This document shows, piece by piece, positions 170 through 63,849 of a stretch of DNA of 64,000 bases. The translations under genes were made by a program, and so were the position numbers. Under the pieces are notes generated by a model that was given only the letters and a program-made list of their open reading frames with translations, was not told the DNA's origin and did not search any database. The DNA is from Bugula neritina (lineage: Eukaryota > Animalia > Bryozoa), in contig OZ037767.1 in NCBI GenBank assembly GCA_964035545.1, positions 6,402,707-6,466,706 on the forward strand. The letters run 5' to 3'. Each line of letters begins with the position of its first letter. The first letter of the stretch is position 1.

Positions 170-3100
170 AAAAAGAGCCCACTGTCTACATCTCTGGACT
201 AGCGCTATGGCCATTTGCGTACTTTTCAGTTGGTCAAGGTGGTTCAGCTGGCGAGAAGCAAGTCAGACACACTGATGCAATGTAATAAATTTTATGCACA
301 TAATATTTAATCTTTGTGTGAACGACAGAAATGTGACAAAAACGTTTGCCCAAAGATTATTCTTTTGAAAGTATATAGTTAAATTGGCACTAATAGACAG
401 AATATCTTTCTACATACAATTTTCTGCTACCGATTCATCTTGAAAAACTAAAAACACAACAAAAATACAAACAATACATTTTTCATACACTATTTGTATA
501 AAATAACTTCTGGATTTATCTCTTTTTGTTGCAAATAATTGCATGTAACTTGAATGTATTTTTGTAGGAACTTGGCCTTGCAGTACAGTGTAATAAACGA
601 TGATATGACTAGTTGGTTTGTTTTGCATGGACGAGGATTTCAACATTTGATATATAACTTATCTGCAGACAGCATTATCAGTAATTCACCAACTATAAAA
701 CACCCTAACAGTGAAGTTAAGTCAGCAGAAGTATTTGTATGGCTGCAGTATCTTAATGGCAGCGATGAAGCCGAGGTAACCGCTTATTTACTAAGACATT
801 TATTACAAAAGTTTTACTTGAATATAATTTTGAAACATTTTAACATTTTTTGATAAATCCTAGAGATAAATATAGTTAGCATCTAGCTTAACATCTAAAA
901 GATATGGTACAATTGCCAAAGCACAAACTAACCATTAAACAAGATCAAATTGTTTTTTGCTATTTTCCTACAATAAACAGTTTTTAATCATCAAATTAAC
1001 ATTTGATGATTGGTTTTAAAAATCTTCTATGCTCTGGTAATTGTTTGCTATATATTAATTTCATTCTTATATATTAGTATATTAGTTAATATATATAATA
1101 TTTATACTGCTTATACGTAACTACATTTTGGAAGGCTTATGTAAATAATGAATGCTTTGACTATAGAAATTCATTATGGGACAAAAAATATCTAGAAATG
1201 TTAAATAACTTGGTATGCATTAATTGGAAATTTATGACTTATTATATAATTGAGATATACATATATTGAAAGTTCACGTGACGAAATATTTATTGAAAGT
1301 ATATATAACTAAACATATATATATATATATATATATATATGTATATATAAATATATATATATATATATATATATATATATATATATATATATATATATAT
1401 ATATATATATATATATATATATATATAATGTATGCTGATTGTCAATCTAGTTGGAGTTCCAGCAAAGTAAAGTGCTCGATATCACGGGTGACAGAGCTAA
1501 TATAATGTAGTGTGTTCAGATTGTTAATAATACATATATATTTTATTTAAAAAATCTTACACGACTATATAGTTTCGTGCAGTAAACTGCACTCCTCAGG
1601 TGTTAGACTAAAAATAAATAAAATCTATGAAGCATACCGATTATTCAAATTTTTACATAAAGAAAATTATCATGCTAAACACAACGTAAAACGAAATGCA
1701 AACATAGTAGTGGATTTGGTGTTATCTATTAATTAATTAAATTGCTCTTTTTCTAAAGGATTAAACTATAAAAGCTAGATGTTTGATGGAAAGGCTAATT
1801 TATAATAGGTAGTACTATGGTTGAGAGTTGTTAGTATTGTTATGTGATGTTGCCCAGGTAGTGTTTACGCGCATGTCTGCATGTGGATAGAATTTCATTT
1901 CTGTTATTAAGGGAAGATTTGCTGGGCTGGTATATTAAATAAATAAAATATATATGTATCATTAACAATCTGAACACACTACATTATATATATATATATA
2001 TATATATATATATATATATATATATATATATATATATATATATATATATATATATATATATATATATATATATATATATATATATATATATATATATATA
2101 TATATATATGGATTATAGTTTATCTAACTAAGCATATATATGGATAGTTTATATGACTCAACATATGTGAACAATTTATGATAATTAGGAAAGTGACCGA
2201 AAACCCAAAGACAATCTGTTTTTAGTATTTGATAGATTTCCTATATAAATATCATCAAAACAAGCTGTAATCATGTGTTTGTTACAGGAAGCTGATGGCT
2301 ATGTGATATACACTGAATGTCTACGAATTGGTGCTGTATCCATACCAAAAGAAAACGTAAGTGTTCGTTGTCAGATTTCAACATTGTCTGAAATATGCAT
2401 CAGTATTCAAGAATATCATTGTTAAAAAAAGCACCCAAATAAACTTAATTAATGGTATATAAGCAACTGTAAATGCTTGCCATTAGATTTTAAAGACGGC
2501 ATTTATTACAATAAATAGTGACTGAAAATTTAATGGTTTGATTGAAACATCTGCTCTAAATTCTCTTTGGTGGAAATTCTCCAAAGGTGTTTGAGTGAAC
2601 GGTATTATAATTTGAAAATGTTGCTTTTGATAGCAATCTTGTTTAAATCATTATAAACATATTCCAATTAATACATTTTAAATTTAAAACAAATACTATG
2701 TTCGTTGAAAAAGTGAGATAAAAATTAATGCTGGTGTTAGTTAAGTGGAGAGCTTTGATCTATTAAACTGATTAGAGAAGCTCTGTGCATGCAGTTGCCT
2801 AACCTGTATTTAACTGTTGCTTTACCTGTATTTACCTGTTGCTTTACCTACAGCTCCAACTATCACCATTGCTTTGATATGAAACTTTTTTTCCAGGCTG
2901 TGCAGTATTTTGCTGAAGTGGGCAAGTTGGGAGTTCATGCAACAGTAACCCTTTTCACTAAAATTCCATATGGTACTTGGCATGGACTTTATGTTCGTGC
3001 ATCAGATGCTGGCACTCACATGACGTAAGCTAATGTTCTAACATGTTGTTTGATTTTGTAATACAGAAAAACAATCATGCAGTGGTGATAGAGGACAGAG

Positions 3101-63849: not shown

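Follow-up and report, generated by a model that had tools for sequence, protein, structure and literature searches.

Large surface proteins built on TSP1 repeats (TSRs) are exemplified by THSD7A and THSD7B, type I molecules dominated by these repeats, which cross the membrane once and end in a short cytoplasmic tail. The apicomplexan adhesins TRAP and MIC2 likewise join a distal head to TSRs, an anchor and a short tail, and the Alr genes of Hydractinia and fuhc/fester of Botryllus offer, in colonial animals, clusters of paralogous surface-protein genes with variable distal domains. Among secreted inhibitors of the Kunitz/BPTI type, TFPI and bikunin are the familiar reference. Here we report a locus of the colonial bryozoan Bugula neritina that shares traits with each of these systems. 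The window, which is the whole stretch of 64,000 nucleotides that was analyzed (positions 6402707-6466706 of contig C3 in an assembly of 216,009,554 bases), is AT-rich with a base composition of ~32% G+C, eukaryotic in character, and contains parts of two giant paralogous genes, A and B, and two Kunitz genes, K1 and K2.

The TSR-rich base of the proteins finds its nearest named clusters in the ESM Atlas among THSD7A-like proteins, with a language-model score of 0.86 that serves as a lead only, and no match to that family was found at the sequence level. THSD7 proteins have neither a mucin stalk nor a Cys-rich non-TSR head, whereas the Bugula proteins have few TSRs (~six), which are of a divergent kind and occur only in the base next to the membrane. 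The likeness to TRAP and MIC2, which includes a weak PDB match to a MIC2 TSR (E 0.028), is an architectural analogy only, since the Bugula proteins lack a von Willebrand A domain, are far larger, carry a central mucin region and belong to an unrelated lineage. In contrast to Alr and fuhc/fester, the Bugula family has no Ig-like domains, and its heads correspond one to one between sibling lineages, with omega below 0.5. K1 and K2 resemble TFPI and bikunin in being apparently secreted proteins with three PF00014 domains each, yet their first domains have a non-basic P1 residue (S in K1, N in K2) and their exons are out of register with the domains, so that a single exon encodes the close of one Kunitz domain together with the opening of the following one.

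Genes A and B are convergent, on the plus and minus strands respectively, and their 3′ ends are separated by the two Kunitz genes, which lie in tandem (Table 1). DNA self-comparison aligned the 3′ halves of the two genes in inverted orientation (A 11103-18345 on the plus strand against B 38458-31821 on the minus strand) at 85-95% identity, and translated comparison carried the homology into the 5′ halves. Using stop-free segments of B as queries against A, two further paralogs and four loci of the GenBank assembly GCA_010799875.2, we found ~20 exons to be collinear in A, B, paralogs C and D and the four GenBank loci, which bears out the proposal of the initial annotation that A and B are exon-for-exon paralogs arranged tail to tail. 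In this genome the family numbers four close paralogs, all of them on contig C3, plus a single distant copy on C9, and the GenBank assembly holds one ortholog each of A, B, C and D.

Table 1. Features of the A/B locus and its paralogs. Positions are those of the window unless marked C3 or genome; exon coordinates of A and B are those of sequence matches, as distinct from verified splice sites.
Feature	Position	Strand	Basis or remark
Paralog D	C3 5.381-5.404 Mb	-	
Paralog C	C3 6.198-6.220 Mb	+	
Gene A, whole	C3 6.395-6.422 Mb	+	
Gene B, whole	C3 6.434-6.476 Mb	-	
A exons X, Y, Z, E1-E5	genome 6395121-6401918	+	0.8-7.6 kb before window start
Gene A, in-window part (E6 to last exon)	557..19285	+	matches to P0012, P0013, paralogs
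A head exons E6, E9, E10, E11	557-751, 4565-4768, 5083-5292, 5711-5920	+	
A candidate exons	about 3350-3500, 3803-3985	+	the first an E8 candidate
A head exons E12, E13, E14	about 6041-6185, 7263-7385, 7485-7646	+	
A mucin exon	about 9080-10060	+	
A exons 3′ of mucin	10208-10351, 11124-11333, 11509-11745, 12446-12721	+	
Retroelement reverse-transcriptase ORF	13015..14919	+	PF00078 RVT_1, E 3.3e-36
A base exons, continued	16039-16251, 16341-16484, 16621-16851, 17455-17643	+	
A-B gene-conversion tract	A 16051..16869, B 34666-33850		821 nt at 92.3% identity, covering three exons and the two introns between them
A anchor exon	18198-18334	+	
A tail exon	19180-19285	+	P0013 model
Kunitz gene K1	20203..22826	-	ATG 22826
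K1 Kunitz domains	22371-22270, 21127-21026, 20328-20227	-	P1 = S, R, K
Kunitz gene K2	24924..27514	-	ATG 27514; last exon 25094-24924
K2 Kunitz domains	26976-26875, 26569-26468, 25386-25285	-	P1 = N, K, R
Gene B, in-window part	31830..62415	-	collinear with paralogs
B anchor exon	32010-31830	-	
B base exons, continued	34678-34466, 34374-34231, 34095-33898, 32775-32587	-	
B linker exon	36904-36782	-	
B exons 3′ of mucin	38909-38757, 38430-38224, 37689-37444, 35401-35144	-	
B mucin exon	39991-39347	-	
B exons E10-E14	44772-44623, 42728-42534, 41840-41706, 41567-41385, 41124-41002	-	
B exons E6, E7, E8, E9	54137-53937, 47937-47815, 47297-47094, 45958-45716	-	
Direct repeat, two copies of ~3-4.7 kb	48211-52861, 54511-57308		blastn self-comparison, 88-96% identical
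B exons E3, E4	59694-59437, about 58957-58823	-	E3 has the PAN-like Cys motif
B exons Y, Z, E1, E2	62415-62272, about 61354-61193, 60623-60354, 60069-59956	-	
B exon X	about 73.55-73.77 kb (window-equivalent)	-	~9.6 kb past window end

Gene A had been placed with its start at position 170, and this part of the model has to be abandoned: the window opens inside A, and exons X, Y, Z and E1-E5, which all four paralogs share in conserved and collinear form, lie further upstream. The secure matches among these upstream exons of A are X to E3, 2.3-7.6 kb before the window. Exons X-Z could be part of a separate upstream gene because GenBank annotates them apart. A search upstream of exon X identified no signal-peptide exon for the A/B family; candidates ~850-950 nt upstream of X were rejected, as they have no splice donors. 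The two copies of the direct repeat lie in the large introns of B and explain much of its extra length, and the retroelement reverse-transcriptase ORF sits in an intron of A and is not part of that gene.

Read from the outside in, the encoded proteins consist of a Cys-rich head of ~900-1000 amino acids, a Thr/Ser-rich mucin stalk, an EGF-like motif, ~six TSRs and a hydrophobic C-terminus, so that the mosaic architecture first described for A and B (Cys-rich head, mucin stalk, TSR-rich base and C-terminal hydrophobic anchor) is confirmed in outline. The mucin exon of A encodes 283 amino acids, 81% of them Ser, Thr or Pro, and that of B 180 amino acids at 74%; both are long, low-complexity and repeat-bearing, the features expected of a mucin-type stalk, and they would probably be O-glycosylated. 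The EGF-like motif, CxCxxGYxGxxC, was read directly in the sequence.

The TSRs of the base, ~six divergent copies with WSxW motifs, were evaluated against TSP_1 (PF00090), for which we required the gathering score of 21.6 bits, a WxxW motif and Cys residues arranged in a CSxTCG-type pattern. In B, the exon in ORF 37408-37746 scored 24.1 bits (E 4.2e-5) and so qualifies as TSP_1, and the A exon in ORF 17431-17679 reached 21.4 bits, just below the cut-off. The remaining repeats and the whole database proteins also fell under that score. Thrombospondin-1 TSRs of the PDB matched the 1240-aa database relative P0012 at E 1.6e-4. The TSP1 repeats of the initial annotation are thus present, most of them in a weak form that stays below the Pfam cut-off.

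The head is made of exon-sized modules, among them one with a PAN-like Cys motif, one that is beta-rich and several small Cys modules in which the motif C-P-x-W recurs. Here the named domains first proposed have found no support. A Pfam scan of ~45 exon translations and six database relatives returned only weak TSP_1 matches, Kunitz domains and one retroelement reverse transcriptase. No match to PAN_1, PAN_3 or PAN_4 was obtained at E 0.05 or better on E3, on the other head exons or on P0012, and a profile of E3 found nothing among PDB sequences at E up to 10. What remains of the PAN-like module is the Cys motif of E3, whose spacing C-x3-C-x5-C-x12-C and F/Y-rich core resemble the C-terminal half of PAN. 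LamG was not matched by Pfam on any exon scanned or on P0012, and the LamG-like module is unsupported. ORF 63083-63430, possibly the piece that had been read as LamG-like, has no Pfam match and matches a non-collinear place at paralog C. Structure-based searches were equally silent: a profile of E9 found no match in the PDB, an AlphaFold model of E9 from an 8-row alignment had a pLDDT of 49 with Foldseek matches that were noise, and a model of the base from a 10-row alignment had a pLDDT of 26 and no fold. All similarity searches were carried out with single exons or database proteins, and codon columns were concatenated only for dN/dS estimates and trees.

The hydrophobic C-terminal anchor is encoded by an exon that is conserved in the four paralogs and their orthologs; in A as in B, a perfect GTAAGT donor closes this exon (CT|GTAAGT in A). 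For A, the last exon of the GenBank ortholog model P0013 supplies a tail of ~22 amino acids with no signalling motif; in paralog C only a few residues follow the hydrophobic segment, and the last exon of B was sought and not found. Of the transmembrane segment and short tail originally described, the conserved hydrophobic anchor stands, and a short tail is predicted by a gene model in A alone. Anchoring may be either transmembrane or through a lipid, since the tails are not alike among the paralogs.

Taken together, these features suggest that A and B encode giant, membrane-anchored and heavily glycosylated surface proteins of a Bugula family that act in adhesion or recognition and are not signalling receptors, a reading to which we assign a probability of about 0.6. 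The adhesion or recognition role is proposed on the basis of architecture alone. According to this model, the proteins would be type I surface molecules whose head binds a paralog-specific ligand on another cell, on the matrix or on a microbe; the mucin stalk would keep the head off the membrane, and the common base may serve as a shared structural or partner-binding part. Matrix proteins and secreted binding proteins typically show this same make-up of mucin, TSR and EGF-like modules, and the shell-matrix proteomes of lophotrochozoans repeatedly contain TSP_1 and Kunitz proteins (PMC13425148). The products might then be matrix, cuticle, adhesive-secretion or microbe- or symbiont-binding proteins whose hydrophobic C-terminus is a transient anchor or a lipid-anchor signal, in keeping with the early stop of paralog C and with the lack of a signalling tail. 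We consider this unlikely, though it is the alternative that deserves most attention, given that the anchor exon has been kept in four paralogs and their orthologs and that its splice donor is strong in A and B, the gene model of A adding a tail exon downstream.

Protein relatives of A and B are limited to hypothetical proteins of Bugula neritina and a few environmental contigs. When one Cys-rich/TSR base exon was run exhaustively with HMMER against 1.84 billion representative proteins, it recovered only four related clusters, all from Bugula or environmental sources. Word-index searches with the head (P0012 residues 1-590 and 540-650) gave no scored match in a protein collection that includes annotated proteins of another cheilostome, Watersipora subatra, and the ESM Atlas returned no match for the head. 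So far, then, the family appears to occur only in Bugula, with the exhaustive search standing for one base exon. The initial annotation could name no family for this architecture, and the blank Pfam result on P0012, the blank word-index searches of the head and the Bugula or environmental origin of every relative of the base module agree with it. The locus thus defines a giant surface-glycoprotein family, Bugula-only to date, whose head modules are without detectable relatives.

We next compared the evolution of heads and bases. The heads of the paralogs are 35-45% identical at the protein level, with 35-37% in the comparison that yielded dS, and their dS is saturated, as opposed to a paralog dS of 0.02-0.29 for the TSR base blocks, which does not exceed the ortholog dS; the divergent heads above a homogenised base that had been proposed are therefore well founded. 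Between orthologs, the head of A is 84% identical to that of its counterpart A′ by direct alignment. Omega between orthologs was 0.24 for the head of A (299 codons), 0.31 for that of B (410 codons) and 0.32-0.40 for that of C (449-463 codons), compared with 0.16 and 0.15 for the bases of A and B (469-586 codons) and 0.16 for the Kunitz genes (415 codons). No exon was clearly above an omega of 1 between the sibling lineages, and ortholog dN was 0.063-0.079 in heads versus 0.026-0.033 in bases. These values indicate that the genes are intact and constrained and that each head is under purifying selection between sibling lineages.

Phylogenetic trees of the two parts tell different histories. The head tree recovers one-to-one orthologs at 100/100, whereas the base tree sets {A,D,A′,D′} apart from {B,C,B′,C′} and joins B and C as sisters within this genome (95/89). 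A tract of high identity shared by A and B runs through introns as well as exons (Table 1), and outside it the introns of A and B mostly cannot be aligned. The low paralog dS, the base tree and this intron-spanning tract together argue that the TSR base is homogenised among paralogs, introns included, by ongoing gene conversion. B and C share 93% identity over exon E1, and A and D ~95% over exon E3. The four heads are ancient and stable, and the base evolves in concert. The locus shows in a clean natural case how two parts of a single gene can evolve apart from each other, with old, stable heads and a base homogenised over ~1 Mb. The conversion partners, A with D and B with C, ignore physical adjacency: the neighbours A and B are not the closest pair in the base. 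Together with a family of 4+1 members and a Kunitz linkage found with the A/D type only, this gives no support to the idea that A and B are paired receptors.

Divergent distal heads on a stalk above a homogenised base, family members grouped on one chromosome and heads that outpace bases ~2-3-fold at non-synonymous sites are what one might expect of allorecognition, kin-recognition or gamete-recognition determinants whose heads are hypervariable in populations and tell self from non-self. Bryozoans are colonial and their recognition genes have yet to be identified; the B. neritina genome paper reported just weak Alr1-like similarities (PMC7576161), and no characterised bryozoan adhesion or recognition molecule was found in the literature searched. 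Hypervariability is nevertheless difficult to reconcile with head types that are each maintained one to one between lineages at the omega values given above, and the tail has no signalling motif. The divergence on which it might be based is also not a property of this locus. Over the whole loci, introns and flanking genes included, DNA divergence between the assemblies amounts to 10-22%, and to 10-18% at the unlinked HSP70 locus on chromosome 2. The 10-20% divergence from other 'B. neritina' data is thus a genome-wide split of sibling lineages, and not locus-specific polymorphism, because flanks and unlinked HSP70 diverge equally; B. neritina is a known species complex (PMC11480708). At 39 of the 40 listed variant sites, DNA runs X2 and X3 agree with the GenBank lineage, which indicates two discrete lineages and not many alleles. 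The idea that the 12-15% divergence of other 'B. neritina' data marks a hyper-polymorphic locus was accordingly rejected, and neither locus-specific divergence nor hypervariable recognition heads are supported by this comparison. We regard hypervariable self/non-self determinants as very improbable. A variant with equally long odds would have the four heads act as specificity determinants of bryozoan self/kin, gamete or symbiont recognition, with the common TSR base docking one shared partner; if true, it would open a first molecular way into recognition in this phylum. The present status of the genes is that of an orphan family of probable adhesion or recognition proteins, and not of a demonstrated recognition system.

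The two genes between the 3′ ends of A and B are, as originally described, a tandem pair of triple-Kunitz genes, with six domains in two genes on the minus strand. All four of the domains that were scanned exceeded the 21-bit cut-off of PF00014 (E 3.9e-13 and 2.6e-16 for domains 1 and 2 of K2, 6.6e-16 and 3.2e-17 for domains 2 and 3 of K1), and all six fit the Kunitz/BPTI Cys pattern. Each gene begins with a plausible signal-peptide exon that ends in a CATCAG|GT donor; the short last exon of K1 was sought and not located. Both products are predicted to be secreted, and four of the six domains would be canonical trypsin-type inhibitors, judging from a Lys or Arg residue at P1.

The order of an A-type gene followed by two convergent Kunitz genes recurs in the GenBank sibling lineage, and four Kunitz domains are convergent to the 3′ end of paralog D, so that the linkage between receptor and Kunitz genes, put forward from the window alone, is conserved both between lineages and at an old paralog. 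It is this conservation, along with the basic P1 residues and the constraint on the Kunitz genes, that could speak for a receptor-inhibitor module in which the Kunitz proteins guard the receptors from trypsin-like shedding or processing and are co-regulated through the convergent 3′ ends. Kunitz exons are, however, very abundant and clustered in this genome (at least 64 exon matches), and duplication of a block suffices to explain the linkage. Moreover, among the paralogs it is the A/D type alone that Kunitz genes accompany, as paralog C has a Kelch-domain neighbour instead. They would thus have been inherited as neighbours of the A/D-type gene and not of the A-B pair, and the linkage is most simply read as the duplication of a block that held a receptor gene and its Kunitz neighbours. 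The Kunitz proteins may be functionally tied to the receptors; a dedicated module of the kind just outlined seems improbable to us.

Finally, the collinear exons provide a correction to the public annotation. The GenBank models of the orthologs of A-D are fragmented: P0012 omits part of E3 as well as E8, E11, E12 and the mucin exon, and the model of the B ortholog is 1465 amino acids long. The corrected gene models supply candidates for expression and binding studies.

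At the DNA level, the two public assemblies named Bugula neritina differ by 10–22% genome-wide, as measured by comparing the whole GenBank-assembly loci L039–L042 and the additional locus L051 with the present genome. In two of the three sequencing runs from the same study (X2 and X3, as DNA contigs), 39 of 40 sites show the GenBank-type lineage. Because of this genome-wide difference and the typing of X2 and X3, samples deposited under the single name Bugula neritina are assigned to different sibling lineages.

Annotation of the family in GenBank is fragmentary, each gene being broken into two to four “hypothetical proteins” with exons skipped (L039, which is VXIV02002800.1, L040, L041 and L042). 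The 1240-aa database relative P0012 lacks head exons E8, E11 and E12, some of E3 and the mucin exon. For A′ and D′, the GenBank-assembly orthologs of A and D, the head has no annotation whatever. The GenBank-lineage counterpart of a Kunitz exon adjoining paralog D is frameshifted (L042:14261-14435), which reflects either pseudogenization or an indel introduced in error by that older assembly, built from long reads. The family also has a distant fifth member on another contig, C9, of the present assembly (G000), for which no Kunitz neighbours were found among the matches listed.

Repeats and other features are collected in the table below. A fragment related to the RVT_1 element of gene A (77% nucleotide identity) lies in an intron of B at window 58444-58553. 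One ORF of the several-kilobase repeat resembles, on inspection, the C-terminus of a non-LTR retrotransposon. The short dispersed repeat occurs within introns of both A and B and also near paralogs C and D, and one of the long microsatellites lies in an intron of the Kunitz gene K2.

Coordinates of the fifth family member and of repeat features
Feature	Location	Strand	Description
Distant fifth family member	G000:C9:7508972-7513158		Membrane-side base architecture in common; 31–50% identity
RVT_1 open frame	window 13015-14919	+	Gene A intron; 635 codons, intact-looking; reverse-transcriptase domain, E 3e-36
Repeat of several kb	window 48211-52861, 54511-57308		Two direct copies within large introns of B; 88–96% identical
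Dispersed short repeat	window 17002-17149, 61624-61770, 43911-43970, first 60 bases		~150 bp; ~86% identical
Long microsatellites	window 25400-25640, 1254-1502, 1943-2144, 25815-26129		(TA)n-type and (CA/CT)-type
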